Shown in pieces: positions 26,341-64,000 of a stretch of 64,000 nucleotides of DNA. The DNA comes from Thalia democratica. Taxonomy: Eukaryota. The stretch spans positions 84,072,001 through 84,136,000 of the forward strand of contig OZ241829.1 in the NCBI GenBank assembly GCA_965202585.1, in the 5' to 3' direction. The notes below the pieces were generated by a model. It saw nothing but the letters and a program-made list of their open reading frames with translations. It did not search any database and was not told the origin of the DNA. Every line of letters begins with the position of its first letter. Positions within the stretch are counted from its first letter, which is position 1. The translations under genes and the position numbers were made by a program.

Positions 26341-28699
26341 GTTAATTTGAATGTACTTTTTAATTTCTCTAACTATTTGCATTGTACCCGGGGACTACAA
26401 CTGTATCCCTTTAATATTTAAATGTCTTTCTTATTTTTCGAATCTGTCCCTTAATCTTTCAAGTATATTATTGAAGCTGGATTTGCTAGTTCTGTCTTTT
26501 CATCAAATTTCATATTGAAAGTAAAGGTGTGGTTTACAGGCTGTTTTCCATCGTATGAACAAAAAGAAAAACCTAAATTTGATATACCTAATTATTGTAC
26601 TTGACTAAATAAATTATTGACTAAATACTAGTTCATGATTATAGAACTTGAAATTTTTTATGAAAAAAGTTTTCATAGTTTACCTATCATTTTTAATACA
26701 ATTATAATTTTGGACCTTAGAAAGACTTGTTTGTATAAACTCTTGTTGGAAGGACTCTATTAATTTAAAACTTTAAGATTTCTGTTAAAATAAAATAATA
26801 ATTTAGATTGATGTGTTAATGAACTTTTACATTGACTGTTTTATTTTTAATGCATCCTATGTAGATTAGTTAGCGATAATTTTGGTAACGTTATCTTTTG
26901 TTTGTAAGACTTTTTTATTAAAATTAATTAAATTAGATTTCAATTTATATTTGAATTGGAACCTACTTTCTTACAAATCATGAAATAATGAAACTTGCAG
27001 AAACCTACTTAAAGTCTTTCAAGATACGTATTTTTAGAAATTTTCTCAGTTAAAAAAACGAAATGATTTCTTACATAATTCTCTTATTGACTAGTGAATG
27101 TAGACATTGTTATAGTGTCTTGTTTTATTTTGATAAGTTACTAAAACTTACTTGAACTATTTTGGCAGAGAACTATCTCAAAATTTATATTTTCATTATT
27201 CACTACTCATATTATTATTGTCGAAGTTTATTGTCAAACGAAGGACCTAGGCATTAATATTGCCACTTGAACTGAAAGACACTAACATAAAAAGAAAAAA
27301 ACAATTACAGTTTTAAAATTAACATATAACTATAAGGTATAAACTGAAAAAACTTTTATAACTAAAATATTCAAACGATTCCAAAGCTATTAATTTCAAT
27401 TATATATTCAAAAACAATAGTATTATGAAATAAGCACCTCTTTTCAAATTTTTTTAGAACCTGGCTCGAAATTCTAGGAAGTCAACCATTCTTCATCTAA
27501 CAATAAATTATAGAACGGTATTTATTTTAAGATAGATATTTTTATCTTGTAGAATATTGATCTCAACAATTATTCGTTATTCATCATTTTTTCAAATTTA
27601 ATTTTATTTCAAATGTTTTTTGCTCCACCTCATTCAGAAATTCTCATTCAGACCAGGTCATTTAATCTAAGAATTAATGAGTAAATACAAATTACATTTA
27701 AACAAATAAAAGTTAAACATCTCCAGCTCCTCTTCTTTTGTTTCCCAACTTTCCGGTACATGGTTGGGGTAGAACGTTTCAAACCGAATGTTGAAACTAA
27801 AAGGCGTTTCTCGTACTTGCAGTCCAACTTGAATAAAAAATAATTCACGTTTTTCTAAATCACGGTGCTTGCTGTGTCTTATTGTGTTAGTAGATTTCAT
27901 AATAATTTGTTTGGCTCATCTCTACATGCCACGTATTTGTCTCATGAGCTTAACTATTATTTGTTTTTTATATTCTTAGACTACATTGTATTTAAACTCA
28001 TAAAGTGTCTTGTCTTTATTGCTGAAATAAATACCAACTTTGCTTGTAATAAAAATAACAAGTAAGTCTTCAACATAATTGTTATGGCGCACTGGCAAAC
28101 TCTATTTTTTCTCAACTGGTAAACATTGCTTCTGTATTTGTAAAGTTGTAAACTCATTTAACTTCATTTTCATCATCTTCAGAAGAAGGTTTTGTTATTT
28201 CCTGTTTAGTTGTGTAGTTTTGGGTTCATAGGCATCTTAACATAGTTGGTCAAGTTGGGTGCAGCTTTTTTGCTGAACCTTTTTACATATAGACAATTCT
28301 CATTTAGACCAGCTTCTCTTCTTTTGTTTCCTAACTTTCCAGCACATTGTTTGGGGCGTAGAACGTATAAAACCAGAAGTTAAAATCAAAGGGGGTCTCC
28401 AACGCCTGCATTCCGACTTGAATAACAAATAATTAACGTTTTTCTCAATCACCGTGCTTGCTGTGTCTTCAGATTTGCATACTAATTTGTTTGGCTTATC
28501 TCTCCATGCCACGTATTTAACCCATGAACTTTATTAAATTTCGTTTTTATACAACAAGTATTTTAACGAAGTTGAAGGCTTTTGTCAACCTAAATGTAGG
28601 TTTTGTGGTTAAAATTAATTTATTTTCCATCCAAGTTTTCAACTATGTAAAAGGTCCTTAATGAATTACTTTTCTTGTTTTTGACTTCAAGTTGATTGT

Positions 28700-29200
28700 T
28701 AATGGAAAACTAGTTAATAGAGATGTTATTTTATCTAAACCTAAATGGTTGCAAATTAATAAATCGAGCATGTTTCCATTTTTGTGAGTTGGTTTTTTAA
28801 GTTGTGAAATTATCTGTGCAGAAATCAAGAAAAAAATTATTAAAGATTTATTAAAGCTTGTACAAGGAATTTTCTAGTTTAGGTTTGGCAGATTGAAATC
28901 CTCAAGAATAAAAAAAGAATAGCTATCCGGCAAAAACAAGTTAATCAGTTTAATTACATTTTTAACAGTTAGGGCGCATTTTGCAGCCAGTGGAGGAAGG
29001 TAGATACACAAAAATCTTATTTAAGTCTATTTTAACATCACATCTATAAATAAATATTCAAAGCCAAGGATATTAATGAAGTTAAAACTTTTTTAACACT
29101 AAAAACTTCAAATCATTCAGAATTCATGTTAAAGATTTTGTAGAGTTAAGTTGATTTCAGAAAATGTTTGTTTAGCAGTTTTAGGTCTTAACTGATTCGC
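28700..29200 (-). mobile_element. CR1/L2 LINE endonuclease (APE) relic
   Basis: FVYLPSS, FILEDFNLPNLN and KPTHKNGNMLDLLICN appear across shifted frames. Confidence 0.7.
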
Positions 29201-29302
29201 AAAAAGGTGGGTTATAGTATATGCATTATATTTTTCTGTTTTTTTTTTAATTATTTTTTGAAAGTTTTCATTAATCTTTCTAAGTTGCTTATGTCCAAGT
29301 TC

Positions 29303-29752
29303 TTATAATAATAAGGCCCGCTATCAGCCGAGATCGGCTATGCGTGTTGTGCACAGAGAAAAAAATAAAAAAATTACATGTTTAAAAAAAATTACATGTT
29401 TAAAAAAAAAAAAAACATACACAGTGATGCAGTAAACAAAACACAAACACACAAAAAAAACAATTAAATTCATTCTGCTTCTTATTTCTTCATCTTCTTC
29501 TTCGTTTTTCCAAAACATTCCTTTTCTCTTTCTTGCAGTCTTTTGTGTATAGTTGATCTCCATTTGGCACGGTCATTTGCAAGCAACTCCCAATCATCAG
29601 TTCCAATGTTCAAGCTTTTTAGGTCGCGCTTGCATACATCCTTAAAACGTAATTTTGGACGTCCTCGGCTTCGTTTGCCAACGACCAACTCGCCATACAA
29701 TAGAAACTTTGGGATCCGCTCAGTATTCATTCTCAGGATATGACCGAGCCAG
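29303..29752 (-). mobile_element. RTE-clade LINE 3' end (RT C-terminus, 3'UTR, short TAT-repeat tail)
   Basis: ORF 29482-29730 reads RIPKFLLYGELVVGKRSRGRPKLRFKDVCKRDLK...DRAKWR. ~90 bp are near-identical to 57962-58052. Confidence 0.88.
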
Positions 29753-29876
29753 AATCCAAGTTCTACTACCTTACAATTTATGCACTGTGTAAAGTGAAAG
29801 AAACAACCTTAAGCAATATTATTGAAATTTTCATTAATGGCAGCCCTTTCAAAATCAGTGTGTCATCCAACAGGAG

Positions 29877-30466
29877 TTAGACTTACATTATCAAGTAGTA
29901 AATTAATCAAACTCCTATATGTTGCTTAGACTTACATTATCAAGTAGTAAATTAATCAAACTCCTATATGTTGCTTAGACTTACATTATCAAGTAGTATT
30001 TTAATCAAACTCCTATATGTTGCTTAGACTTACATTATCAAGTAGTAAACTAATCAAACTCCTATATGTTGCTTAGACTTACATTATCAAGTAGTAAACT
30101 AATCAAACTCCTATATGTTGCTTAGACTTACATTATCAAGTAGTAAATTAATCAAACTCCTATATGTTGCTTAGACTTACATTATCAAGTAGTAAATTAA
30201 TCAAACTCCTATATGTTGCTTAGACTTACATTATCAAGTAGTAAATTAATCAAACTCCTATATGTTGCTTAGACTTACATTATCAAGTAGTAAACTAATC
30301 AAACTCCTATATGTTGCTTAGACTTACATTATCAAGTAGTAAATTAATCAAACTCCTATATGTTGCTTAGACCTACATTATTAAGTAGTTAATTAATCAA
30401 ACTCCTATATGTTGCTTAGACTTACATTATCAAGTAGTGATTCAATCAAAATTCCTAAATGTTGCT
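29877..30466. repeat. Minisatellite, 49-bp unit x12
   Basis: The unit ttagacttacattatcaagtagtaaattaatcaaactcctatatgttgc restarts every 49 bp from 29877 to 30416, with no unique spacers. Confidence 0.97.
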
Positions 30467-30523
30467 TACCTTTTATTAGGAAACAAACAATAAACTAATG
30501 GAACCACTGACCCTTAGCTTTTT

Positions 30524-30960
30524 CTAATAATTAAAAAAAATAAATAATTCCTCCATTAAAATCTGTATGTTTTTTTCCCAACCCAAACTTTCATTTTCAT
30601 CGGCTTTAATTTCAATTTCTGCAGATAAAATACTAATATTTTTTAGTTCTTCTATTGCAAATTGTATGCAGAGCAAGCCACAACTGGTGTCATCTTGTAG
30701 AATAGAATGATCAATAGTTTTTATTTCCCATTCCTTATCAAATACCCATGTCCTTTTACATTTGGGTTCTATTGTATTATGCTCCGTTTGATTATGTAAT
30801 TCTGCAAACCAATTCACAATATCTTGTCCAAACTGTTGATCTGCAGAATTTTTCATTCGATCTTAAATGTATAAAATATTTTTGTGTTTGTCAAACATAA
30901 TAAATATCTAGTGTTTCTGCTCATTTGCAAATCTTTTTAAACCCTTTTTATAGATTGTGT
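30524..30960 (-). pseudogene. Ulp1/C48 SUMO-protease-like gene, most complete copy, with nonsense lesions
   Basis: EQKH*IFIMFDKHKNILYI*DRMKNS...W.IKTIDHSILQDDTSCGLLCIQFA gives the His...Asp...Gln-x-Asp-x-x-Ser-Cys-Gly order (Cys codon 30680-30682). Confidence 0.72.
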
Positions 30961-31179
30961 TCAACTAGTTTTTTTTTTTAAAGGACTATCTCTATTATCA
31001 CCTCACAAATTATTATTTTTATCTTTTAACATACACATGTTTCTTAAGATTTTCTAAATTCAATAAATGAATTGATTATCTGTTTATTTTTAGTAATGAT
31101 TTAAGTTTATTTTCTAATCACTTGCACAAACTGTATTTTGGTGTTCCTATGGCTGATAAGACTGGTTGTTGTAGAGGGT

Positions 31180-31540
31180 AAGGACCAACGTCTTCATTGT
31201 ATATTGATAGGTCGCTCATAAGTAATATTCTGCAAATTGGTCCAAGCGTGTTTATCACGACCATAGTTGCCTTTTTACATTATAGCGTTGCAGATAAATG
31301 TGCGACTCCAGTATTTTCATCTATCAGGTGGTTGCTTCCATTCATATTTCCATGAATGACTTGCTGCAAGACTACCCTGACTTCCGTCTGATGTTTGTTT
31401 TTCTTGAAACAATTATCCAACTGGATTTCGAAGATTTTCTTAATCCTAATTTGAGACGATAAACTGTTGTTGTTTGTAACTGGGAGGTTGTTTGTGTCAG
31501 CAATAATCCACATAAATGTCAATTAAGAATATAAAATAAG
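31180..31540 (-). mobile_element. hAT-like (ZNF862/C17orf113-type) transposase N-terminal relic
   Basis: QTEVRVVLQQVIHGN...SATL*CKKATMVVINTLGPICR aligns with 54167-54450. Confidence 0.55.
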
Positions 31541-31759
31541 CAGGTTGCTGTTGCCCATACATCACCTGGTTTACTTATTATATATTCAATTATTTTACTA
31601 CGCTTCACGGTGTCTCGCTGCTCTCATAAACCTTTAACCTACACTTTGTTTCCTCGTCTATCGACGCTTGTCAAGTTCGACGCTTTTATTGCCAAATAAA
31701 ATTTAGTATTACAATTTAATTTGTTTTAAATTTAATCAATTTATGACGAAGCTACTTTT

Positions 31760-32450
31760 TTAATCTCCATCTAACTGATGGATTCAAGATAAATTTCAAT
31801 GACAAATGGGTTAAGAGATTTAAAGCTACGAGGTCGCATTTTTCAGCGCCGTGGAATGAGTTGACGTGGACGTCAAAGTTGTAATTGCCGTTGGTTTTTC
31901 TATTTTCAAACTTTCTAAACTTTAACTTATAAAAAAATTATTCTACTTGTTTGACTATTGGGACGATTCGTTCTATTCCCCGGTACCGTGTACTCAATGT
32001 TCACGTAGCTAACCTTCACCTTGTACAACCTCGTTGTTTGGAATTCTCTTTTTTTAATAAATGTTTGCCTCATTAAAGTTGCTACACTGGAACCTTAAAA
32101 GTTATAAATAATCTTGAATATTCTCTATCTTCAATTTTTTTAGTTTTTTATACAACAAGTATTTCAACGAAACTAAATGCACTGCGTCAATCTCTTTGTA
32201 GCCCTTATGGTTCAAATCAATTTAATTTTTCATCCACGTTTTTAACTATGTAAAAGGTAACTTCTTTCTCCTTTTAGTTTTATTGTTATGGTTATTGACT
32301 CATTGACAATTTATTTTTGTGAGCAAGTGAGAGTCAAACTTAATTGTTCATAATTTTAAAATATATGTAGCAACCAAATAAATTCCTGATGTCTCTCTGC
32401 GACTATCGCTTGTTGGAAACAACTTCCGGGAGAATTGGGAACTCAACATT
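31760..32450 (-). mobile_element. Penelope-like RT relic (same family as 38400-39215)
   Basis: NFDVHVNSFHGAEKCDLVALNLL resembles FDVPMGSYDGAEVCELVGLYLL. DNA similarity to 38790-39215 and 51830-52130. Confidence 0.65.
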
Positions 32451-32500
32451 TGAGGTAAATGACCATAAGGTAATGCTTTCTTTTAAAAGAAGATAGAAAC

Positions 32501-35500
32501 TACGGGTAGGGAGTACAGCACATTTTTTTGGTCATGTTGTAAAATCTATATGAGGAGTCTTGATTTGGATGTGTTTTGGTATCATTAAAAAGAATTAAAA
32601 AAAAAATTGAAAAAATTTCTAAAAAACAAAATTGCACCCCAAAAAACTGATCTGGACCCCAAAAATCACATAATGTTTGATTTTTTGACTTAAATAGTTA
32701 TAAAGTCACTCATACACGTCCTAGACTTATATTTTATATCTTAAATGAAAGCTAATAATTATAGGCATACACTTAATGACATTTCAACTGCTTTTGGAAT
32801 ATTATGACGTCATAATTGCACAAAATATGTAAATTTTATCTCTAAAATGGTGCATTTTGAAAGATTAAGAAGCATAGCTGGTTGTCTAATCTAATTAAAA
32901 TAAAATATTTTAAAATAAAACTTTGTAGATATACTTACTTACGTTTAAAGTTTAGGTGATGTTGTATGTATATTAATGGGATATTTGATGTCATAATTCA
33001 TTTAGCTATAAGTATTTAAAAATAAACCTAAGAATGTTATTCAATTTGCATTACAACAACATAACGAATTACAAAAAAATTATAATTTATTATAGGCAAC
33101 ATAATGTTGTATGGCATTAAACATTAAGTTAATGATTGCAAAACAAATAGAGACTAGTATAATAAAGAAATAAAGAACATTGCATAATAAAACGAACATT
33201 GCACTGTATCATTTAGTATTAACACTTAAGATTACTGCAAAATGACTGATAAAATACTAGTATAAAATAACTGTCAAATGATTGATAAAAATCCAACTGA
33301 CTATATGTACATAATACTCATAAAAATACATAAAAACTACTTTTTAACTTTATGTAAAAGACATCTGTTCTACTATTAAATCTATTTGGACATGGTTTCT
33401 CAGTGAAAAAGTAATAGATCTTTCATTAGAAACATCCCATTTCCCATCAACTTTATAATCAAGAATAGAATCTAAATGCAAGTTTAGCAAATCACGTTTA
33501 GGTGGGTGTTTCGACTTCGAATTTCTTCTGTCTTGAACTCTCATGAGGTGGTCCATCTTATAAGTCCCATCATCATTTTTTCCTTCACACATAGCAATAT
33601 ACCATGTGTCTGATGACCCTTCACTAATTAATGTGACATAAAAATTCCCTTCCATAATATCTTCATTTTTTTCTTTCTGTATATTGGGGGAAGAACCCCC
33701 TACATTTAATAATGCATCAGTGTTTGTTGGTAAAGAACATAGAGAGCACTCATCATTTCTGCAACAAGAGCACATAAGTTTAGAAGTCTTTCTTCCTGAG
33801 TATTACCATTAACTTTAAAAAGTTCAGAATTGTATAACACTTCAGATTTGTGAGACTCTCTAAAGTATATTAACTCATTACGAACAATAACTTCATTTCG
33901 ATCAGGATGAAATTTTAAAATAGAACGCAGCTCTTCCACGCTCACTACAGGCCCACCCCATTTTTTACACAGTTTGAGACGTTTCTGCACATATTGATCC
34001 CTTTTTTTCCCTTTTTCACTTTTTTCATTAATCTGTTTGAGCTTTAAATTTTTTTGATCTGCTACCCACCTTTGCTCCATCTCATTCAGAAATCTAACAA
34101 CTTTATTAATTTTTTTTTTCATTTAAAGTTTGAAAAGAATCAGATATAAGTAATGTACAGTCATTTCTTATCCCTTTTGCTGTGAATTGTTGGTTTCTAA
34201 ACTTTGCACTGCTGCTCGCCTTCCAAAACCAGCAAGGTGTCTTTCAGATTCCAAGTTGTTTGTTGGGAGTCCAACCAGTTCTTCATTACTTAATAGGTTG
34301 AGCTCAGTAGCACGTGGTGGATTTGAAAAACAAAACATTCCAAAACCATATTCTCTACCTGTTTGGCGATCAAAAACTTGAGCGGCATGGAGACACATCT
34401 TCTTAAGAATTTTACAACATATCTCAGAAGTTGGGTTTAACACTTTAATATGTGGATAATGTACAACATAGGCATCCAAAGTATTCATTATTCCATTGCT
34501 AAGATCTTCGTATAGTTTAGGAAATACTTTAAGAAGGTCTTGTTAAGAGCTAACCTCAACAAAGTGTAGAAATGGTAGTGTTACCTTGTGAGTTAAGTAA
34601 GAAAGTGCCTCAAGTTCAGTCATTAGAAATTCAGAGTCAAGCAGTCGTTTGACAACTTCCACATGCTGGTTGCTTAGGTGCGTTTCATTTATAAGCATGC
34701 AAATAAACGGAAGGCTTTGCAAAATAGATGAGGCAGAATACCCAAGTTTGGTAAACCTGCGTTCGTGATAGATTGCAAGGCGGTTAACTTGGTTTTCTCT
34801 GTTTAAAATGTAGTCAAAGAGATCTGCTTGATTTGTACTGTGCGCTGACTTTTCATGACTGACCAAACTTAATATTGATGAAATTGCACACTCAGCTATA
34901 CTTTTTTTTCCTCGCAAAAATGTTTTAACCGATGGATTTAAAGCTTGAAGCTTTTTTCGAAAATCTAACTTTGATTCTATTTCAGCCAATATTGTCAAGT
35001 TAGAACAATCAAAGGCCTTCACTGGATGGGATTTGCACAACAAATGAGTTGGTGGTGGAACAGTTGATTTAAAAACTTTAGAAACTTCCTCCCCAATGGT
35101 TAAGTTTTTGCTAACAGAATCTGTCATGATCAAAGTTGTATTTTGTCAAAGCTGAACAGGCTTAACTGATTCTTGGGAAGAAACAGTTAAACCAGACAAA
35201 ATTTGCATATTTTGTGCAATTATGACGTCATAATATATCAAAAGCAGTTGAAATGTCATTAAAGGTATGCCTATAATTAAAAGCTTTCATTTAAGATATA
35301 ATATATAAGTCTAGGACATGTATGAGTGACTTTATTACTATTTAAGTCGAAAAATCAAAAATTATGTGATTTTTGGGGTCCAGATCAGTTTTTTGGGGTG
35401 CAATTTTTTTTTTTAGGAATTTTTTCAATTTTTTTTTAAATTCTTCTTAATTAGACCAAACCACATCCAAATCAAGACTCCTCATGTGTCTAGCAAACAT

Positions 35501-35523
35501 CACCCAAGTACTCCCTACCCCTA
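32501..35523 (-). mobile_element. 3.0-kb DNA transposon with ~335-bp TIRs, 7-bp TSD and a decayed, 5'-deleted DDE transposase (hAT-like)
   Basis: TIRs at 32501-~32840 and ~35194-35523 (TA[C/G]GGGTAGGGAGTAC...). tagaaac lies at 32494-32500 and 35524-35530. ORFs 34543-35133, 34168-34488, 33706-34122 and 33350-33775 carry MTDS, HLLCKSH, ERRFTKLG, PTNNLESERH and CKKWGGP. One in-frame stop and several frameshifts. Confidence 0.85.
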
Positions 35524-36149
35524 TAGAAACTTGCAAAATTTTACATTAAAAAAAGGTTTTTATTCTTTTCATCATTAAACTGGTTATGACCACCATAAAC
35601 TCTGCTATATTCCAGATTTAGGTACATGTCGTAAGCTTTATTTTCGCGGGCTTTTTGATCACTTTAACTTTTGTAAGCCTTAATAATTAAAAAATTCTTC
35701 TTCCAATCGTCTGTATCAACGTGAAGCGTGTGAATCACAATTTAATAAAACAAATGTTAAGATATAATGAGTATATTACAAAATAGATATTTTTTCTTAA
35801 TTTTTATGATTGGAACTCAATAGTCACGTTTTCATCTTAGATCACCATAATCCAGAGCAACAAAATTTACAGCTACATATCTTTATTATATTCACTTAAA
35901 TTAAATATTAAACCAATTAACCACTGATGTTTGCCAAGTCACTTCTTAACTGTTGTAGCTCCCATTAGTTTTCATCTGATACGACAGGAACAAAACTTAT
36001 GGTGACAAATCTTTCAATCCATTCTTTGTCGTCCATGTTATTTGTAAAACAAACTTTTACATAAAATACGTATATATTCATCTCTTATTTAATAAGTACA
36101 TGTTTGTTAGTTTTTTTAGATTTTTTGGTCGGTGTCAAGCAGAAATTTT

Positions 36150-36425
36150 AGTTTGTACTTTTATTACAATTTGCATTGAATTGTGCAGTAGGATCATATC
36201 ATTTGATCAGTTTCTATTTCTGTGATTCAAGCTTTTCATCGTAACTGTCACAGTACTCTAGAACAAAATTTGATGCCAATTATCTTTCGGATTATTGTTT
36301 GCCTGTTTGATGGAAAATGCTGTTATTTAAAATCTGTGGTTTGTTAAAATTCGTCGTGCGTAAAACAAGTAGTTTTCTCCTTTCTGCGGCTTTTTATATT
36401 TTTGCAGGTCACGAAGTTGTTCCTT
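36150..36425 (-). mobile_element. Possible retrotransposon Gag-like relic
   Basis: LRDLQKYKKPQKGENYLFYARRIL resembles the Q..GE....Y..R Gag motif. Short and degenerate. Confidence 0.3.
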
Positions 36426-36449
36426 AAAAACATTTTTAAGCAAAAAGTA

Positions 36450-36770
36450 TTGCAAGTTCTATGCAGAGTAGGCCACAACTGGTGTCTTCTTGTTGATGAT
36501 TTTTTAATAAAAAACACATAACAATAATAAACTTGAATAATTTATGCAATGTCATCGTACTCAACACCAGTATTGTTGAAACCTTGCAAATTTTTCCCGC
36601 ACCTGGCATGTATTCCGTTATTGTCACTATCAAATACCCATGTGTTTTTGTGTTTGTGTTTTATTGTATCGGAATCCATTTGATTATGTACATCTGCAAA
36701 CCGGCTCACAATATCTTGTTCAAGTTGTTGGTTTGCAGAATTTTTCATTGCATCTAAATGTATAAAACCT
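36450..36770 (-). pseudogene. Ulp1/C48-like fragment
   Basis: DAMKNSANQQLEQDIVSRFADVHNQ...WVFDSDN and QQEDTSCGLLCIELA (ORFs 36542-36748 and 36436-36633). Confidence 0.68.
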
Positions 36771-36849
36771 TAAAGTTTGTTTTATTATTATACGTTTTTA
36801 TACAACAAGTATTTCAACGAAACTAAATGCACTGCGTCAATATCTTTGT

Positions 36850-37015
36850 AGGTTGAGCATTTGTATGAAGCTCCATAAATTAGGATTAGTTCCACTTAAC
36901 ACTCAGTAAAGAGTGCGATGAGCCGCTTTAGCGTAATTGTTGTTTCTCTGACTTCTTGACAGAACACTTTCATGTTGATTCCAAATTTAAATAAGAAAGG
37001 TAGGCTGACTTCTGG
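36850..37015 (-). mobile_element. MULE/Mutator transposase C-terminal relic (copy at ~61110-61230)
   Basis: IWNQHESVLSRSQRNNNYAKAAHR.L...L...NPNLWSFIQML matches the WN....RTNN..E..H...HP.LW.FI motif. Confidence 0.68.
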
Positions 37016-39215: not shown

Positions 39216-39229
39216 TTAAATCAGTTAAA

Positions 39230-39520
39230 AACAAACAAACCCGCGCTTTGCATTTTTGATTAGTTTTGAATACGATTCCTTGCAGTTCCAATGTTTGACA
39301 CTAGTGTTGTTTGTTTTGCGTTTAACATTGTACTATTGGTTTTGTACCTTATATGTTATAAATGATACTTATAAGCTTGTGGAGGGCCACAAAATATCCA
39401 AATATTACCTTTAATTTCATTTTTAAAGGGGTAATTTTTATATCTATTTGTTCAGTTTTTGACAGATGTTACTATTGTCACAATAGCAAGTAAATTGGTA
39501 TATAACCATTTTATCAAATT
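39230..39520 (-). mobile_element. FLYWCH-like Zn-finger relic (MULE-type); copy at 43125-43430
   Basis: The 43k copy reads YYNVKRKTNNTSVKHWNCKELCSKTGQKCKARVC. The DNA duplication is clear. Confidence 0.55.
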
Positions 39521-52876: not shown

Positions 52877-53116
52877 TTAATTGTGGGCTAACGATGTTGG
52901 TGACCCAACATCTAAAGCCTCAGTTGGGTCAGGGTGACTTACTGTGGGCAGATAGTCAACCTGACCTTTTTGTTCAGACTTTTCCTGCAAGCGGGGTGAC
53001 CTTCTAACAGGCGTATTTTCAGGACCCACTGCAGGCAACTTATCATTAATATTCTCCAAGTTGGACATAGTACTATAACTAATTTATAAGTGCTAATTTG
53101 TAATTATTAGTGGACA
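52877..53116 (-). mobile_element. Start of an element ORF (MSNLEN...VRRSPRLQEK); copy at 4-191
   Basis: 52912-53116 aligns with 4-191. Family not identified. Confidence 0.45.
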
Positions 53117-53507
53117 ATATATATAAAACACTTAAATCTACTCTAGACTACTTAATATAAATCAGACAGATAGTTTAGTGATGAATCTTTTATATAAAAC
53201 ACAACAAGAAATAATAGCATATACAAACTATAAATTACTATGAAAAACTTTTTAGAAACTACAATCTATTTAAATCTCTTTAAAATACTTCAAACAATAA
53301 ACTAAAAATTAAACAAAACTTTTAGTAAAGAAGAAACTGTAAAAGAATAAACTATTAACTATACCTGGCTTAAATATTAAAACAATTAAATACCAGTTAA
53401 AATATTCACTTTTAACACCAAACAATACTTACAATACACAATCACAAAATCAATACAAGTTCAATATCTTGTTGCTTCCAGCTGCACACCAACCCACCAA
53501 CTGCTTA

Positions 53508-53584
53508 CAAATACACTGACTGTCATTTTCTGATATTTAGTTGCATCAGAATTAGTTTGAAACACGTCAGATGATTCTCATTGG
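53508..53584 (-). promoter_or_regulatory. Possible minus-strand promoter (CCAAT, TGACGTG, Inr-like TCAGT)
   Basis: ATTGG at 53580-53584, CACGTCA at 53563-53569 and rc TCAGT at ~53515-53519, upstream of the ATG at 53068. Short motifs only. Confidence 0.25.
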
Positions 53585-54195
53585 CTAGTGCAATGAAGCG
53601 TGTCAAACTCAAAATATTCTCTGAGCTCAACTTTGAATAATGAATAATGCACGTATACATTACATAATAAATATTATAATAATTAAATCATTCTCCTTAT
53701 TAGCAAAAATAAAATCAACAATATTTTGACATATTTCTTAATCTAAAATAAAAGTCAACACAAAAATCAAATATATGTTAGAAATGAAACTGACTTAGTT
53801 TACTAGAACGAGTTTACTGTATAATTATTAAAAAAAAATCATAGTAATTCTAACTTTAATTTTATGTAAATTTTAATTTATTAACCTATTAAATTCTGTA
53901 AAATAAAAACTTTTTCCTTTAACTGTCATTAAACCTACTTACATCTGAGTAATCAAACAATGTCCAACTCATTGCATAAAAAAATATTTTCTTTTACAGC
54001 TAACGTGTTACAAGAATTATTCTATATTAAAAAAATAAAACAAAGAAAAATGTGTTTAAAGCTTATTTCATGTTTGAAATTTAAATTTAATAAGCTTTTT
54101 GTATTAAAATACTTTTATATTCAACAGAATGTATGTAAATAAATAACAAATTTAAACTTAATTAAATTAACAAAGCTTAAAAGTAATTTTCTTAC

Positions 54196-54909
54196 CTAGA
54201 AAACTTTGTCCAGCAGTATCTGTACTCTCATCCAGATAGAAAGAACAATGCTTCACCATAAAATCAGCTATGATTAGTCTTCTGCAAATTGGTGCGAGAG
54301 TATTGCATACAATCATTGTTGCTTTCCTCCTTTTAAGCGTTGCTGATTCGTGAGCTGTCCCAAGTGTCTTCATGACATCTATCTGGTGTTCGCCTGCTAG
54401 CAAGTTCCCGTGAAGAGCTTTTTGCAATGCTAACCTGACTTCTGTCTGGCGTACGTTTTCTTAAAGGAAATTGTTGAATTGCTGTTTAAAAAATTTTTAC
54501 ATCCTAAACTGATTTATTGAGTTGTGGTTATTTTCGACTGGAGATGCGCGTTTATGTCGGTCAGAATAAGAATGAACTTTTAAGTTGCTCTTTTTTGCTT
54601 GTAGTTCTACATTGCACCACTTGCAATAAGCTTTAGTTTCACAATTTGTTGGAGCAATCCAATCTAATAAGTAAAACAGCATTACACATAGTTGACATAA
54701 CAGATATAACTAATAAAACATTAAACACTATTTATATTAAATTTAATTTTAACTATATAATTTAAATTTATATAAAAAAAAAAACCTTTTAACTCATAAA
54801 CAGATTCCCAAGATTTCTGGTACCTCATCTTTTTAGGTGGTGGAAAATCTAAAGTTGGTAAATCTTCTTGGTCTGGAATTTCATTTAAAATAATTTCAAC
54901 GGTTCTTAC
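54196..54909 (-). mobile_element. Intron-containing hAT-like (ZNF862/C17orf113-type) transposase 5' relic
   Basis: Exon 54786-54909, a 122-nt GT-AG phase-1 intron, then exon 54196-54663 give YQKSWESVYELK/DWIAP...AYCKWC...H....H and FYLDESTD. A gtaag donor follows 54196. Internal frameshift. Confidence 0.65.
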
Positions 54910-55509
54910 CTACGAAAATGTAACTGCTAAAGTAATGTGTTTAGTGTGTAACTTTATAACTATTTGTAAATCCAAGAAAAAAAAACCTAAATGAGTACTT
55001 CATTAAAATATATTTTGATAAAGTTTTGCGTAATTTTTGTGGCGATTTCCATTTATATTATTATCTTCTCCATTTCTTTCTGCTGCATCATCTAGTTGGC
55101 GGTTTGGCTGAACCCACCTTCTTTTTGCAAGAATTGCCTCAAAAACTTTGTCCACGCAATTAAAATTAAAACAGCTTTATCCTATTTATTGTTGTCGAAA
55201 TTCTGGTGTTAGCGTTTTGTTTTCTAGTAAATCAAACGTTTATGTACTGCTTCGTTTTATTACCTGGTTTCGGTGAGCGTTAGCTGACCTGAAAACATGG
55301 CCTACCCCCTATGGCCTTAATCAAACAAATATATGTTGCTTCCCTTTTGTTAGGCAACAAACAATACACTAAGGGAACCACTGACCCGTAGCATTTACGA
55401 ATGATCAATAGTTTTTTAAAATTAATTCAATAAGAAAGCTGTTTGTTTTTTTCTCAACTTAAGAACGCCATTTCATCTTCTTTAACTTTAATTTCTGCAG
55501 GTATAACAG

Positions 55510-55665
55510 TGATATTTTTTGGTTCTTTTTTATTGCAAGTTCTATGCAGAGCAGGCCACAACTGGTGTCATCTTGTTCAAGAGAATGATCAAAAGTTTAT
55601 ATTTACCGTTGTCACTATCAAATACCCATGTGTTTTTATGTTTGTATTGCATCAGGATCCGTTTG
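55510..55665 (-). pseudogene. Ulp1/C48-like fragment
   Basis: The reverse strand caagatgacaccagttgtggcctgctctgcatagaacttgca reads QDDTSCGLLCIELA. Confidence 0.65.
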
Positions 55666-56239
55666 ATTTGTTAATTTAAATAGAAATACGAATGAGTACA
55701 TGCTCCTTGATACGTGTTTTTAAATTTCTTGAAGTTTGTCCGATATAACTACTTTCACAGAAAATTATGTTTGTAAAAAAACTTGTTGACGACCACAAAA
55801 TATCCAAACATAACCTTCTATTTCATTTTTAGAGAGGTAATTTTTATATTTACTTCCCTTATAAAATTTTCAAATAAAAAAATCAACCCAGTTTTCTTAA
55901 TTAAGTTTTTATTTGTCGAATTCAACCTTAAAATAGTTTGATTAATGATTCAAATTTTCAATCAAACTGGGTTTCCCCACATACTTGAAATTTTTTTATC
56001 TTTCATCATTGCAAAAATACTTGCTACAAGTTAGTTGATGCCATACCCTTGACGTGTTTTATTTTTAATTTGACTTGAATAAAGACTTGAATAACTTTGT
56101 TACTTTTGCATTTGATATTTCATTCGCATTGTTTTTAGAATTGTTTTTCTCCCAATTTCTCCTCGTTCATTTTTCATTTACGTTGGATTTATGAATCTGA
56201 TATTTTTCTAGTAGACTCTCGGTATTCATTATTATTTGT

Positions 56240-56830
56240 ATTACCATACTTTTATGTTTGGCTTCTATTGTATCAGGATCCGTGTGATTATGTACTTATG
56301 CAAACCGATTCACAATATCTTGTCCAAGCTGTTTGCATTTTAGATTATATTGAAACTTGTCCTCATGGTCTTTGAAATAAATGAATGTATCGTTGAATTT
56401 TATAATTGTTCAACATTTTTTATTTTTTATTTTTTTGCAACTATTCCTGCTGCTTTATTGTTAATGTTGTTTAAGATTTTAGTTTGGGCCTTTTTGTAGT
56501 TTGCAGTTAAATTATCCAGTTGTATTATGTTATAAAGGTCTGTATCAATTTTATATATGTTTTGTCAGCTCTGATTATAACATTTCTTTTTCTTTGTTTC
56601 ATTAATCAAAACATTTAAAATCATTTAAGTATTCACATCTACTTTTCTTAAATTTTAAGTTCTTGCATAATAAATCGTTTTCCGAACTTGCAGTTTTACT
56701 TGATATTGGAGCACTTCTATTTGAGGGGAGTATATTTTTATTACTATCAATTAATTCACCAACACAGAGCCAGCGAGTTGATCCCGGAGATCTGAGCCTA
56801 ATAGGAAATTCCCTTGAGATTTTGTTGTAA
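56240..56830 (-). mobile_element. Penelope-like ORF N-terminus joined in frame to an Ulp1-like segment
   Basis: SENDLLCKNLKFKK...ADKT...NYKKAQTKILNNINNKAA...FIYFKDHEDKFQYNLKCKQLGQDIVNRFA*VHNHTDPDTIE. Confidence 0.62.
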
Positions 56831-57955
56831 TAATTTTCCTATAAAACCCGCCTGTGTTGTGAACTGGAAAACCAGTTATATACACTGAAAACTAGATTAT
56901 TAACCTATTATTAATTCAATTATCAATTCAATTATTAATTTTAAGTTTCATAATGTATTGATTTAACAAAATTGAACAAAAAATATTTAGATTAATAATT
57001 GAAAAAATTATTGCTCATCTGAGAATTTTTATTAGAGCTCTTATTACTAGCTTGGAATTTTTAGATCAATTTCTAAGCTTAGTTAGTGCAAAGCACAACA
57101 ACATCTAAAGAAAATTTTAAAAGTGCAATGCACCAATATAAAATTTTTGAAAGTAAAATTTTTTGCTTCTATTTTTTTAGCTCCGGCATTCTTTCAGAAA
57201 CATTGATCATATGTTCAACAAAGTGCGTCATTAAGGGATGTTTCTTTGTTGCATCACGATCTTATCTTTGCTGCTGAAGTTCTATTATGTCGCTGGTCTT
57301 CAAATAGAAGAAGTTCTACCATCGTTTAGCCGGAACGAACAACTTCTACTGAGAAAACTGGACACGTACGTTCCGGTTGGTTGATTCTTCAAAAATATTT
57401 CTGTTGATCAAGCGTCATCTGTACTGCAGTATATTGATACCGTAAACACTTTCATAACATTCTAATTACATTCTCTTGTATCCTTTTTTCTTCTGAATCA
57501 AATAGTTTTTTTTCACTCTCCGTTTCGCACATGACTTTAAAGTTTTTTTAAAAATTTTTCTTTTTTCTATGCTTGCGTCTATTTTTGTCTTCAAATCTTT
57601 GGTAAGATGGCTTAAATCTTTCTTTTGTTTGAAATATTGTTCTGGAAGATTATAATTCGTAGAGATATTTCTGATAGACTTACGAAGTATTTAATCATTG
57701 GTGTATCATTTTTGAAATAAAATTAAGGATGTCTCTGTTGAAATAATTTTATTCCTGATTTTCCTCTTTCATTGCCAGTTTTGTGACTTTGGTAACTTGT
57801 CCTTTTTTAAGACGCTTTTTATTAATTGATTGATAGAGATTTTTAGGGTCATATCTCGAAAATATAGTTTTAATTCAGTCATTTTTTTTCGAGCTCTTCT
57901 TCTATCTCCTTATTATCAGGCACATAGTTTAGAGAAAAAAAATTCAAACCAAAAT

Positions 57956-59115
57956 TCAAAATCCTCGGTTTCGTTTGCCAACGACCAACTCGCCATACAA
58001 TAGAAACTTTGGGATCCGCTCAGTATTCATTCTCAGGATATGACCGAGCCAGCGAAGCCTGCGCTGACTGAGGGTAAAGTACATAGTGGTAAGACCAGTA
58101 CGTCTCAATACTTCCTCATTGGTGATCTTTTGCTGCCATGTAATTCCAAGGATGCGACGAAGGCATCGTAGGTGGAAGGTATTGATTTTCTTCTCCTGTA
58201 CGCTAGGTAACGTCCATGTCTCGCTACCGTAAAGCAGAGTACTGCAGACACAGGAACGGTAAACGTTAGCCTTTGTTCGAATGCTTAGCTTTTGGTTATC
58301 CCAAACTCTTGCAGTCAAGCGAGCGAAAGTGCCTGATGCTTTGCCAATGCGACTATTTATTTCTTTGTCCAATGATGCGTTTGACGCAACATTTGAGCCA
58401 AGGTATACAAAGTTATCTACATTCTCGATATCCTTACAATTGATCTTGATTGATGGTAAAATATTTGTTACTTGACTTAGAATTTTAGTCTTCTTAAGGC
58501 TTATAGTAACGCCAAACAGGATTAGGCTTATCACCGGTAACTGCCGTATTCCGTGTTGTGTCTTCGCGAAAAACCTGCGAAGCTGGAGTAAACCTCTCCA
58601 AGCACAAAGCCAGGGCATAACATTGAGATTCCAGCTGTTGCCCATGCAGCAGGATCTCACTCTCCACAGTGAGAAGAGCTCAGCGAAACAGCAAAGCTGT
58701 TACAGCCAAGATTCATCATTGTCGCAGGAGCTGCCGGAATGACATTGAATACAAAGTCAGACCGCCTACGTGGCTCCGACTACGGCTTTTTGATCAGAGT
58801 TTTGCATCTCCTAGAGGAATAGAAGTACAGTTCATCGGAGTTTCCTTTACCCCCGTGTTTAAGTCTTTACCATGTCTGATTTTTCCTCAGGGTTTACTCC
58901 CGAAGCCTTTGCTTAGCCAAAAGCAACCACAAGGCAGTGGTGGTCGGCAAAGGTTTTACAGAGCTGATGCTAAATCAGCTCCAACCCCAAGGGGAGATCA
59001 TGAAAGTTCTTCAGGGATCTTCTGTGTCATCTTTGTAATCTTTTGTGTCATCTTTGTGAACTTCTGTGTCATCTTTGTGATCATCTGTGTCATCTTTGAT
59101 AAGTGTCATTTTTGA
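57956..59115 (-). mobile_element. RTE-clade LINE, internally deleted (putative 5'UTR fused to the RT C-half) and 3'-truncated
   Basis: ORF 57956-58660 has FGVTISLKKTK, FVYLGS, RIGKASGTFARL, STLLYGSETW, FHLRCLRRILGI and RLRWLGH. A GC-richer leader lies at 58660-59115. Confidence 0.88.
59020..59103. repeat. 21-bp tandem repeat x4
   Basis: Unit ttctgtgtcatctttgtgatc with variants. An inverted partial copy is at 40078-40116. Confidence 0.9.
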
Positions 59116-59186
59116 TAAGTTTGTATATAATTTGACTATTTTCAAATCTTTCCTTTCTTATTCAATGTATTTGAACTTATTAAATA

Positions 59187-60543
59187 CTACAGATATATTA
59201 ACTCATTTACTACAGATGTATTGTAAGGTTTAATACAAGTTTTAAATTTCCATTGAGCAAAGTCTTTCAGAAAATAAAACACGCACGTGTTATGCTTTCT
59301 CCTTTTTTGCTCTGCTTCTGACAGTTTTGTTGTTTTATTTCCTACATTAAAATTAGTGGCTACATACTCGGTGGAAGTAAGTTTTGGTTTTTTGTTTGGA
59401 AGGTTTAAAATTTCATCTTGTTTCGAATGTTGCCGTTTGTCACACAATGAAACTTTGTTTTTTGTTTCCTTGGCAGTTTCAAATTCAAAATTGCCAAAAC
59501 TTGCTTCGAATGAAGTAAGTTTGGGTATTTTGTTTGGTAATTTTGAAATTTCATAATTTTTTAATTGTTGATTTGTAACACATAATATCTTAAGAGTTTT
59601 TGCTTTCTGGGTAGTACATATACATCCTTGTCCATGTGGAACAATAGAATAATTGTGCTCTTCATGAACACAGGAAAAACACTTAGGCTTTTCTTGATCT
59701 ACGTTAAACTTTTTGTAAAGTTCAATCAGCATGTGCTGTGTGGAAGCAGTCGCTTCCTGCGGACTTAAAAATTTCCAATCTTGTTCTTGACACAATTTAA
59801 GGAACGGAATTCTCGTGTCCATCAAGTCAATGTCAACTTCAGGATCAGTGTCTATTCTTCGTGCTCCGTCATTGTTAAGTATGACAACGAAGTTGTTCTG
59901 TTTTGTGTCCTTGAGATACTGACGTGCCTTACTTAACACAATTTTGTTCTTAGTGACGTCATACTGTGTATTTTTTGATGAATTTGTTGTTGTTCTTCTT
60001 TTTGGTATCTTTTGATCCAAAACTTTTTCCATTATATCCGTCCAGAGATCTCTTTCAAAGTATGAATGTTCTGTGACCGAACAGATTTCATCATTCTGCT
60101 CTTGATATCCTTTTATCAAGCCACGATTTTCTCCTTGTTCCAACCCTTTTTTGTACCAGAAGTTAAGCCTTTGTTGATCTGGTACCTTTTGGCTCGGTAA
60201 TGTTAAACAAGTAATCGTCACCTTTCTTTGGAGGACACGACCATATATGCCCAAAACGGTATCCTAGTCTGCCGCAGTATTCAAAATATCCAAGTATAAG
60301 CTCCATGTAAACCTCGGAGCGTATCCGATCATTAATTATTTTAACGGAGTCCAGGTAGCCTATGTAGACTCTGTCGTTGTTTGGCGATCCGCAGTCTTTG
60401 TATTCTTGAGAGTGAAGTCCGAAAAAGCAAATTTCCTTGCCATCTTTTTCTTGAAATGCAAAGAAAGCTCTTGCTCTGTATTTAATTTCTTCGGGGAAAG
60501 CTTCTTTAAATCTTGTTTCCATGATGTATATGTTCTCCTTCAC
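59187..60543 (-). pseudogene. CREBBP-like: Stand-alone p300/CBP-type histone acetyltransferase (KAT11) domain, intronless, one frameshift at ~60200
   Basis: ORF 60163-60543 reads YRARAFFAFQEKDG.EICFFGLHSQEY, RVYIGYLDSV, RSEVY and GHIWSCPP..GDDYLF. ORF 59187-60254 continues QKVPDQQRLNFWYKK, YFERDLW, NFVVIL and DPEVDIDLMDTRIPFL...STQHMLIEL, colinear with the p300 HAT domain. Confidence 0.92.
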
Positions 60544-62010
60544 TTTTAGATGCTTTATTTGTTGTAACTAACTTTTAAAACATACCAACTTTTAAACTAA
60601 AATACATTCTTAAACAATATCTAAAATGTTAGCCATTAAAACAGCTATAACAAAATGAAAATGTATGAAAATAAATATTGCTTTACTTAAAGTATTGCTT
60701 GTTAAACTGCATTGTAACAAAAGCTAACACTAAATTGCCTAGTAAAACTGCTCTACATAATAATGAAATACATATAAACACATTGATTTATTTTAAATTT
60801 ATTTGCGGGTAGAAGAAGCTTGAACTCTGCCATTGACAATTTTTCTTGAACATTATAATTTATGTCTTTATAGAGGCTAGTCTTTCCAACCTCCTCTATC
60901 ATGCTTTCAGTAATGGAAAATTTCGGCAACAAAATCCCATGGCTTTGCAAGTTGATCTGACAATATTAAAGTTTAATTGTGGAATATTGCTTTTCAATAT
61001 TAATAACAATTATTTTTCATCTGTGTGGATAGTAAAGTATGAAATTTTTGATAATACAAACTTATGCAAACTATTAACATAACAATATAAGTGTTAAACT
61101 TTGTTACTTTATTTTGAGCGATGAGCCGCTTTAGCGTAATTGTTGGTTCTCTGACTTCTGGATAGAAACCTTTCATATTGATTCCAAATTTGAATGAGAA
61201 AGGTAAGCAAAAAAGTAAATTTAGATTCTACTTTACATTTTCTCAATAAAGAAGTATAGCTAGTATTTTTACTGTAATGAACAGTTAAGTTACATACCGC
61301 CATTGATAGTATCATCATTTGTTTCCTGTTGTTGCTGATCTTCTGAATATATTGACTTTTTAGTACTTTGAATACCAAAATTACCTATAAAATAACAGGT
61401 TATTAAACGAAGTAAGAAAAGTAAAATTACATTGCTAACCTTAGCAGGTATTTAAACCTTAAACTATTCAAAAGAATGTTCGTATAATTAAAAATAGGTG
61501 ACTGAAAAATTGCTGTTACTAACCTGGTATAATTTTTATCTAGCATGTATTTTAAGCTATAACAAATGATTTTAATTAAATTACACTTTTCAGGTTGAAC
61601 AGCCAATTTTATGAATTCTCGAACAGATTCTTTTCGTGCTTTTCTAAGCATTATTTTGTAGAATATTCTGCTCATGTCACTCTTAAAGTTGTAGTTGACA
61701 ACATAGTTTTTATATTTGTAGTCCCAAAGACTTGTTTAAAAACCCAAACTTTATCTATTTAATTTTTGACAGATGTTACTATTGTCACAATAGCAATTAA
61801 ATTGGCATGTAACCATGCTTTTATCAAGTTATCTAATATTTTTTTTAGGTTTCAATCAAAGACTTGAGGTAAAAGCTATTCATGGTTTAACAAAAAATGT
61901 AGTACATACTTGTCAGCTGTTAAATATTCTCTAAACCATTCAAGTTTTTCTAAAAAAAAAAAATCATCTTTGTGAAAATGCATTTACCAGTTTTTTTTAA
62001 ACCTACTTGT

Positions 62011-62367
62011 TCACAAAAAAAGCATGTGTTCTGACATTTTATTCGTGCTGGTAAATGGAAATCTGCAGTAAACTAGTAACTGCGCTTCACCAGAAACATC
62101 AACACTCTCATCAAGAAACTGATTACACAAACGTAAATTTTCCAAAAGCTGTTCTTTCACATCTTTAGCTACAAGCGTAGTTGTTCTGGCAGACAAAAAA
62201 ATGGTATCAATTTGTTTAGCAGCATCTATGCCGAAAAAACGTTCTACACATCTAAAGAAAAGTAGTTTTAAACCTTCAGCATCAGTATAAGGTTTTTTAT
62301 TCTGCATTGTGTAATAAGCTGCATCTTTTGACGATAATATTGCAGGACTACATTTTGTTGGTGTCAA
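62011..62367 (-). mobile_element. hAT Buster/ZBED8-SCAND3-type transposase relic
   Basis: KKPYTDAE, LSARTT and LDESVDVSGEAQLLVYCRF. Confidence 0.8.
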
Positions 62368-63129
62368 TGGACATTAAATCAATCATCAAAAAAATTAAAT
62401 TAATCTGTCAAGATATAATTTTTTGCTGTTATTATTAGGTACGTTGCTTCCTTTTTTAGCTATATAACTAAATGAGCAACTGACCTATACTACTTGATTT
62501 TGTGAAAGATGTTTTTGCAAGTGGGAATAGTTTAAATTGTCGTATCCACCTAAAACCTTAAGATCCAGAAACATTCTCCAATTTGCATCATTACAATACA
62601 AAATCTGTCGTAAGTTGGTGTTGCTAACAACCTTAAGATTATCAATAAAACACTCTTAACAGACGTTTACACTTAAGGAGCCTTTATACAATTAAGACAA
62701 AAGTTAAATTGTTTCATGCTAGATCGATGATCACAAGTAAGAAAGTAAACTAAGTTTCTGAAAGAATGTAAATATGTTAAAAAGCATACTGTTGCACTAC
62801 TTGATAAAAAATACCTATTTTGACAATTTTCATCTGAATACAGCAACATTCTTGTCCAAAAAGGAGTTACAGGCATATAAAATACAACAAGAGTTCTTAT
62901 GAAACCAGGCAAATAGCGTTTATTACGATTTTTGCTAATTACTTGTATATTCAAATTTGTATATTTTTTAAATAACATCCCAAAAGGTGATTTTTCTGCC
63001 ATTGTTTTTTCCTTTTTTTTTTTCGTCCACTTTTTTTATCACGAATCTTAATGTTGAAAAATTATCCGGTAGAATTTATTATTAACGTCGGTATCAATTT
63101 TATGTAGGTTAGATGTTTTGTCAGCTCTG

Positions 63130-63960
63130 ACTTTAAATTTTTTAATTTGGGATTGAAATTGGATGCTACACATTTAGTTTTAAGCTTTTTCAAACTCTCA
63201 TAATAATCTTCTTTTCTTTCATTTTTTCTTTTCATTATTCTGTCCTCACCTGTAATAATATCTATAAAGATATCCAGTGGGTGGAAAGATTTTCCGTCAA
63301 AAAGGTAGAATTTACAGCGGTAGCTTTTGTAAAAATATGGTATAGAAAAAACTTTTATTGTTTGCTTCAGTAAGGATGTGCTCAATATCTAGGAAAGGCA
63401 ACTTATCTACTCCATTTTCTGCCGACATTATTGTCGATGTCTAATCTAGATCGTACTCTTTAAATGTTTTCTTGAGATATTTACTTATTTCTTTTAATAC
63501 TGAAATATCGTCAATGTAACGTCTTACAAATAGTGATTTATTTAATTTAGAAGCTTTCGTCATTATATAATGTAATGAAATATTAGCTATGACAACGGAG
63601 TTGTTATCACCTGTAATTATACCCTTCTTTTGTTTAAAATATTTTTCCTGAAAAACTAAAGTTATTGCGTTTTCTAGTAGACTTTTAGTGATACTAGGGT
63701 AAAAATTGATAGTATAGAACTTAAGTAAATTATATTTTTCTTATTCTATGATTTTAAACCATTTTAAAACCTCGTCAGAGCTTATCCGTTGGTTAAACTC
63801 TTTTCTACTTCGTATTTGTCTGTTTATATTAACGCTTATTGTTATACTAATTACTCCTATTTCTGATCCAATCGGGTAGGGCTGTTGGAAGAAATCTAGA
63901 AATTTTTAAAACTTTTAGAATTCTGTCATAATGAAAAAAGTTGAATTGATATTTTCAACT
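63130..63960 (-). mobile_element. Penelope-like RT relic with an intact YIDD
   Basis: GDNNSVVIANISLHY...FVRRYIDDI, LPFLD and YLFDGKSFHP. Confidence 0.78.
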
Positions 63961-64000
63961 TTTTGCAATATTTGTTACTCTTGGTGCCTTACTTTGTACA

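Follow-up and report, generated by a model that had tools for sequence, protein, structure and literature searches.

The stretch considered here comprises 64,000 nucleotides (nt) of Thalia democratica contig OZ241829.1 (positions 84,072,001 to 84,136,000; below, "the window"), with a G+C content of 28% and zero N. It falls into three parts (Table 1): an AT-rich gene island (2060-26317) lies between two mosaic parts, a main block of Penelope-like, long interspersed element (LINE), MULE, hAT and gene fragments on its right and a short second part on its left. Relative to the gene island, the mosaic parts are higher in G+C, T-rich on the plus strand, and packed with pieces that are repeated within the window. 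The left part matches the block at 30.8, 36.7, 40.6, 50.4, 52.9 and 56.3 kilobases (kb), always directly, though in a different order. The original prediction, which described a one-strand mosaic at 26390-64000 and again at 1-2.3 kb, was correct in placing such material on both sides of the island; its limits are better drawn at 26318-64000, continuing past the window end, and at 1-2059.

Table 1. Features of the window, in order of position (bp, base pairs; aa, amino acids; RT, reverse transcriptase).
Feature	Position	Strand	Remarks
Left mosaic part	1..2059	-	beyond gene island; 57% matches other mosaic pieces
Ulp1-MULE copy, left mosaic part	535..863	-	His-region motif KHWIFIIFD
Nuclear poly(A) polymerase gene	7814..13719	+	within AT-rich gene island 2060-26317
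Main co-oriented mosaic block	26318..64000	-	extends past window end; 37% is dispersed direct repeats of itself
3' end of the LINE family of 57950-58699	29305..29752	-	18-bp tail repeat
Ulp1-MULE copy A	29840..31044	-	TSCGLLC at 30685
hAT-type DNA transposon	32501..35522	-	3,022 bp; ~340-bp terminal inverted repeats
Ulp1-MULE copy B	36448..36792	-	
21-bp microsatellite match	40022..40120	.	inverted to 59012-59175; low-complexity
Repeat family adjoining GIY motif	43121..43537	-	other copies 39226-39544, 61747-61936, 55762-55855
Penelope-like RT-region piece	44795..45375	-	77% identical to 56288-56860, 67% to 63063-63226
Ulp1-MULE copy C	46107..46779	-	MULE motif YGSVVPLVYCLLHNK
Open frame with one RRM domain	48079..48696	-	206 aa; best solved relative a Nop4/RBM28-type RRM
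Ulp1-MULE copy D	54984..55676 (lower part), 56249-56354 (upper part)	-	Pfam MULE E = 0.085
GIY-YIG endonuclease piece	55679..55822	-	YIGQT..R..KEH; weak Pfam GIY-YIG
Penelope-like RT-region piece	56288..56860	-	joined to Ulp1-MULE piece at ~56354
5'-truncated LINE, C-terminal part of open reading frame 2	57950..58699	-	without last ~360 bp
p300/CBP-type acetyltransferase (KAT11) domain	59190..60567	-	divergent, intronless; one frameshift
hAT-family transposase internal fragment	61938..62358	-	FAM200/ZBED5 RNase-like, DUF4371
Penelope-like RT core	63063..63803	-	Pfam RVT_1; YIDD at 63518

The co-orientation of the block is real and far beyond chance. It was assessed on repeats, frame counts and AT skew, none of which needs family names. 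Self-comparison by blastn returned 74 intra-window pairs, 72 direct and 2 inverted. When the pairs were merged into 29 families, with each copy counted once, there were 48 informative copies beyond the first; 45 were direct and 3 in the minority (binomial p = 1.3e-10), which at the copy level is nowhere near a 50:50 orientation. One minority copy reflects the paired terminal inverted repeats of a lone hAT element (32.5/35.5 kb); another belongs to a 47-bp pair that falls outside the block, at 15.8/16.2 kb; and the third is a 21-bp microsatellite (40022-40120 against 59012-59175). The last of these contains 40078-40116, previously reported as the one piece of opposite orientation; because it is an inverted match to a microsatellite, we regard it as low-complexity sequence and not as a coding relic.

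Frame counts point the same way. In 26390-64000 the minus strand carries 18 stop-free frames of 100 aa or longer, where 0.72 would be expected and none of 300 block shuffles gave more than 3. The plus strand carries 3, with 2.2 expected; base composition alone would favour long plus-strand frames, the opposite of the excess observed. The 18 long frames fall in at least ~12 unrelated sequence families. Among all stop-free segments, self-blastp paired 96 on the same strand and 2 on opposite strands, and of the 500-bp bins, 62 of 75 in the block had a negative AT skew as opposed to 14 of 48 in the gene island. Every meaningful domain match sits on the minus strand. The Pfam scan behind this statement took in stop-free frames from the mosaic, 50 on the minus strand and 20 on the plus strand, and is too insensitive for short, decayed pieces; it gave just RRM_1, KAT11 and RVT_1, plus weak matches to GIY-YIG and MULE, and the 20 longest plus-strand frames had zero matches. 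Together, the direct copies, the 18 long frames against 3, and the strand of the domains bear out the earlier claim that the relics read on one strand.

The orientation extends to cut-and-paste elements. The hAT-type transposon at 32501-35522 is structurally complete at its ends and has the same 8 bp on either side (ATAGAAAC at 32493-32500 and 35523-35530), a perfect target-site duplication, because of which we take it to have arrived by ordinary transposition. Its four consecutive minus-strand frames (33353-35145, ~610 aa) matched neither Pfam families nor solved structures in the PDB, and it may represent an undescribed transposase lineage. A second, hAT-type fragment is named from relatives, 75% identical to it, which carry FAM200/ZBED5 RNase-like and DUF4371 models. 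It is cut at 61938, exactly where the GIY-adjoining repeat starts.

The two LINE pieces conform as well. The copy at 57950-58699 shows 94-99% nt identity to ocean and other metagenome contigs, and for this reason the LINE copies are considered young. The closest DNA relatives of the LINE (85-99% nt) and of the hAT fragment (84% nt) were in Tara Oceans and other metagenome or transcriptome assemblies, aligning to window positions 57943-58516, 29303-29752 and 61938-62355; the metagenome contigs compared were 1-7.5 kb long. Such relatives may point to a marine source animal, or the elements may be shared across species. On one related contig of 28% GC, the LINE lies opposite to a repeat with which it is co-oriented in the window, which argues, from a single case (n = 1), that the two families are not intrinsically linked.

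Counting independent events in the block is less simple than counting copies. The relics formerly labelled "Ulp1" and "MULE" belong, to judge by their arrangement, to a single element: copies with the cysteine motif TSCGLLC have the MULE motif YGSVVPLVYCLLPNK further downstream (an order seen in C and D). MULE was the sole Pfam match of these pieces, and a weak one (E = 0.085); the Ulp1 label comes from motifs, that part having matched nothing in Pfam or among PDB sequences. No inverted repeats of the element were seen, and a PDB sequence search with the frame at 50 kb found no match. All five copies overlap the same ~500 bp, and the stretch 46107-46779 parallels 54984-55476. The junction between a Penelope-like RT piece and Ulp1-MULE at 56354 is common to 44861, the lower end of the piece at 44795-45375. 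Within copy A, a 49-bp unit is repeated 12 times at 96% identity (29877-30468), an amplified piece of MULE transposase coding sequence matching 46552-46643. Since the Ulp1-MULE copies share so short a segment and some junctions are held in common, many relics are not independent insertions, and the figure of about 30 coding relics previously put forward is inflated: it counted Ulp1 and MULE as separate elements, along with many duplicates of one short fragment and shared chimeric junctions.

These observations lend some substance to a neutral origin, in which a few internally co-oriented chimeric retro-copies were followed by local direct duplication and deletion, with no selection on orientation. 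Retro-copies would be internally co-oriented since reverse transcription copies sense RNAs, an A/T-skewed target would mildly favour target-primed insertion in the same sense, and a region of direct repeats only cannot be inverted by ectopic recombination and would hence stay co-oriented. Dispersed self-copies do make up 37% of the block as opposed to 8% of the gene island. Like the five Ulp1-MULE copies, the five copies of a non-coding repeat family noted at 31.8 kb each overlap one short core, and both the shared junction and the parallel stretches described above are as local copying would leave them. Order changes of the kind X-Y against Y...X are those expected from tandem duplication followed by deletion, and long T runs exceed long A runs on the plus strand (14 to 8). 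Codon positions contribute evenly to the mismatches between copies, without 3-base periodicity, so that the copies diverged by neutral decay and not as active lineages. That pattern fits decay after copying, yet would be the same whether the copies were duplicated locally or had inserted independently and then decayed. Repeat offsets showed no periodicity, which, together with the shuffled order of the pieces, argues against a simple tandem array. A neutral origin also leaves at least ~12 unrelated coding families still co-oriented (p ~5e-4, or ~0.01 with chimeras merged), and a skew-driven bias of about 60:40 cannot yield 0 inverted copies. The cut-and-paste hAT insertion with its own target duplication is left unexplained, and the young LINE copies are independent insertions that nonetheless share the orientation. 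We consider this origin possible, but unlikely.

The non-coding family itself (32134-32201; further copies at 28544, 36784, 39127 and 51833) keeps one ~70-bp core in all five copies, with the B-box-like GGTTCAAATC on the plus strand. Scans for tRNAs and Rfam families were negative for this family, as for the window as a whole.

The Penelope-like pieces bear on the more specific proposal of a Penelope-driven concatemer. An exhaustive protein search with the RT at 63063-63803 recovered 92 relatives, and those of full length show YxDD, then GIY...YIG ~260 residues on, with Pfam RVT_1 and GIY-YIG. A profile hidden Markov model built for detection from nine database Penelope-like proteins (RT plus GIY-YIG) matched the window at E = 1e-22 (63063-63803) and 5e-15. 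No single copy in the window has both RT and GIY-YIG intact; taken together, the matches indicate that these elements are of the endonuclease-bearing kind and not Athena. The GIY-YIG piece sits in a 573-bp insert (55676-56249) that splits Ulp1-MULE copy D, and ~45 bp of the interrupted copy are duplicated on both sides of it. This resembles an ordinary, nested insertion, and the flanking duplication is within the length range of the tails described for Penelope-like insertions. Copies 39226 and 43121 of the adjoining repeat family share the same 3' boundary base in unrelated flanks. Both end in ...GCAAAGCGCGGGTTTGTTTGTTT, with the complementary AAACAAACAAC ~70 nt upstream, which may mark where a non-autonomous derivative genuinely ends on its 3' side, with a stem.

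Penelope-like elements would not be expected to co-orient by their own mechanism. They normally form inverted plus tandem arrangements and target palindromic (TA)n (PMC8557442); the Penelope-like clades known from cnidarians have this target. A palindromic target gives no orientation, and the mechanism therefore predicts mixed orientation; among the 5 or more Penelope-like pieces in the block, none is inverted. Target preference was accordingly rejected as a cause of the co-orientation, the (TA)n target of the cnidarian clades being palindromic.

Two fragments resemble host genes. From 60567 to ~59700 the KAT11 piece spans nearly the whole p300 acetyltransferase domain (Pfam E = 7e-28; PDB 5kj2, E = 3e-14), and its 358-aa frame (59190-60263) runs into a 55-aa piece (59199-59363) which is 76% identical to an unrelated metagenome protein. 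A homologue search with the KAT11 frame, under a length filter that excludes full-length CBP, gave one short, unrelated match. On the evidence of its alignments it is too divergent for a recent copy of the canonical CBP gene, and instead of a decayed host CBP copy it may be part of a gene transported by a mobile element. The region has 39% G+C against ~30% around it, and a LINE 3' fragment lies next to it. The other fragment is the RRM frame. Of the labels first given to the mosaic, our tools thus support the Penelope-like RT, the GIY-YIG piece, the two LINE 3' fragments, the hAT-type fragment, KAT11 and RRM; MULE is weak and Ulp1 motif-based. The division of the LINEs into three CR1 and two RTE pieces was not reproducible, and calpain was not found in the window by motif scans or Pfam.

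In its strong form, the concatemer proposal holds that the whole array was built in situ by RT joining sense RNAs end to end, driven by Penelope-like elements as in the Terminons of bdelloid rotifers. It draws on the fact that the pieces of genes and DNA transposons come from within coding sequence and have neither introns nor inverted repeats, and that unrelated coding sequences meet at sharp junctions (61938; 59363, in frame; 56354/44861). Twice, moreover, at 60.6-57.9 kb and 31.0-29.3 kb, a LINE 3' part comes after a fragment of non-LINE origin, an arrangement like that of L1-type template-switch chimeras; in the second case the LINE 3' end lies directly downstream, in the minus sense, of Ulp1-MULE copy A. 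Yet the window holds no recognisable pseudo-LTR (long terminal repeat), no tandem TTAGGG or TTAGG on either strand, and no hammerhead at the Rfam gathering score or at E <= 1, nor a CUGANGA...GAAA core on either strand, although some Penelope-like clades are without canonical hammerheads, which limits this last negative. The elements carry GIY-YIG, unlike Athena. Both the hAT element, with its inverted repeats and 8-bp duplication, and the ~45-bp-flanked insert are ordinary insertions, and the LINE at 58 kb is without the 3' end at which priming would have to start. No second multi-kb chain of several modules was found in the metagenome collections searched by protein and 20-mer scans, a search outside of which the source genome lies. 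Separate chimeric insertions would, in any event, still be random relative to each other. The proposal did not hold up, and we regard it as most improbable. A weaker form survives on the strength of the junctions, in which template switching produced separate chimeric retro-copies that were subsequently duplicated within the locus; it is suggested by the intronless gene fragments, by the sharp coding-coding junctions, one of them present at two loci, and by the gene or MULE fragments that twice stand just upstream of LINE 3' parts. Such chimeras would link some modules, but would not explain the shared orientation of separate events. We further considered a new kind of self-growing, one-strand retro-array, in which template-switched sense RNAs of Penelope-like, LINE, DNA-transposon and host origin are re-copied within the locus. 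It would be distinct from Terminons in being chromosome-internal, endonuclease-bearing and without hammerheads, and we think it very unlikely.

The gene island offers a different kind of explanation. Its nuclear poly(A) polymerase gene lies on the plus strand, with exons at 7814-8140, 8277-8483, 9009-9281, 9719-9868, 10139-10339 and 11041-11250 that match the PAP_NTPase, PAP_central and PAP_RNA-bind models collinearly; beyond them, a Ser/Arg-rich tail extends to ~13.7 kb. A plus-strand exon-like frame at 18725-19055 has no family match. Upstream of the gene, 5049-6522 holds a ~640-bp tandem duplication of 86% identity; repeats akin to it lie at 22.7 and 24.4 kb, and all are in direct orientation.

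With a plus-strand gene and a possible exon at 18725-19055 as neighbours, the block might be a giant intron, a read-through region or the 3' region of an ordinary plus-strand gene, purged of sense insertions whose splicing and termination signals would interfere with the host transcript, with no role for small RNAs. Such purging would affect every element class, and gene fragments too, in line with a bias that is independent of class. An antisense bias of transposons within transcribed regions is, moreover, established in animals, but the known intronic biases are modest, with ~55-80% of insertions antisense, and not ~100%. No plus-strand coding exon was seen across the 37.7 kb of the block, where the higher-GC plus-strand frames shadow longer minus-strand frames, and this argues against an ordinary intron. 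Being upstream of the poly(A) polymerase gene, the left part at 1-2059 would call for another host gene or for some nested arrangement; no exon coincides with the shift in composition at 26318; and AATAAA is not depleted on the plus strand. We judge this explanation rather unlikely.

We tentatively favour, at somewhat less than even confidence, a further reading: that the block is a transposon graveyard transcribed from the plus strand, in which antisense relics have been kept, most likely as a uni-strand precursor of PIWI-interacting RNAs (piRNAs). On this reading the block is an old, decaying nest of Penelope-like, LINE, MULE-Ulp1 and hAT insertions, with gene fragments carried along and some of it re-duplicated locally, in which only relics antisense to plus-strand transcription would have been retained. 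The data show the co-orientation, the ordinary insertions, local duplication and neutral decay; plus-strand transcription, piRNA production and selection on orientation are inferred from them. The resulting long plus-strand RNA would be cut into piRNAs antisense to each element stored in the block. The proposed direction of transcription is also that of the poly(A) polymerase gene.

Among the points that recommend a piRNA source is the behaviour of elements that have no mechanistic reason to be biased (the hAT with its 8-bp duplication, the second hAT-type fragment, MULE-Ulp1) and of the youngest, clearly independent insertions, the two LINE copies and the hAT element, all of which conform. 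Because the Penelope-like mechanism predicts mixed orientation and A/T skew has only a mild effect, a filter on orientation appears the best explanation. To our knowledge, transcription through the region, here from the plus strand, is the sole generic filter of this kind. The block extends over tens of kb dense in transposon fragments and is strongly strand-biased, both features of uni-strand clusters. As PIWI proteins are general in animals, a piRNA source does not depend on Hydra as the host. Cnidarian piRNAs have been described as arising from uni-strand loci complementary to transposons (PMC9923473), most of the major piRNA clusters of Hydra are single-stranded (PMC3592418), and antisense piRNAs mostly map with mismatches and so stem from loci distinct from those they target (PMC7161359). 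In Drosophila, flamenco-like clusters can be predicted solely from the strand bias of transposons (PMC10643416, PMC11400887).

Several points weigh against a piRNA source. Sequence signs of plus-strand transcription were not found in the block; plus-strand AATAAA, at 77 observed against 57 expected, is in slight excess where depletion might have been seen. The bias is independent of class and includes the KAT11 and RRM fragments, whereas that of flamenco-like loci is confined to the elements they control (Gypsy); nothing in defence would call for gene fragments to lie antisense, unless these were carried in with retroelements. A protein-coding gene separates the two parts of the block. Finally, the independent choices of orientation lie far below the copy count, conservatively at ~7-12 founders, all in one orientation, and the neutral divergence between copies is part of this lowered independence.

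Should the piRNA reading be correct, the block would be a sequence-defined case, from outside the insects, of one locus storing LINEs, Penelope-like elements and cut-and-paste transposons alike in antisense, and a concrete place to test the trap model of transposon immunity in this animal. If its origin is instead neutral, it shows that chimeric fragments duplicated locally can imitate the strand-bias signature, and caution would be due in the use of sequence-only cluster finders.

Among known systems, the Terminons, or Athena chains, of bdelloid rotifers are likewise co-oriented multi-module arrays of tens of kb that combine a Penelope-type RT with foreign coding sequence. They differ in their endonuclease-deficient Athena RT, their position at chromosome ends, their telomeric repeats and hammerheads, and their intact open reading frames; the block has GIY-YIG, neither telomeric repeats nor hammerheads, and parts which are all decayed fragments. 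Template-switch chimeric retrocopies made by LINE RT are known from mammals and fungi. Like the two arrangements seen here, they place a 5' fragment from an unrelated RNA ahead of the 3' part of a LINE in the same sense, without introns and at sharp junctions, but they consist of two or three parts over a few hundred bp to a few kb and do not explain the shared orientation of many insertions over 40 kb. The antisense bias of transposons inside transcribed genes resembles the block in its class-independent excess antisense to the host transcript and differs in its usually modest strength; no host exons are seen in the block.

Uni-strand clusters of cnidarians (Hydra, PMC3592418; reviewed in PMC9923473) share the single-strand character, and their precursors are described as complementary to transposons. 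They would be the natural home of the block if the host were a cnidarian. Those of Hydra differ in that they are described as unique non-coding regions (PMC3592418), and we found no published analysis of the orientation of transposon content in Hydra piRNA clusters. The flamenco and flamenco-like clusters of Drosophila (PMC10643416, PMC11400887) hold Gypsy retroviruses, to which their bias is confined, while the block, of which ~40 kb are seen here and which is known from sequence alone, holds Penelope-like, LINE, MULE and hAT material and is biased across all classes and gene fragments; a specificity for Gypsy-type elements may be a property of Drosophila somatic clusters. Flamenco-like clusters also run to tens of kb with near-total strand bias and adjoin ordinary genes, they are old and decayed yet still receive young insertions, and in Drosophila strand bias by itself is accepted as their sequence-only predictor.

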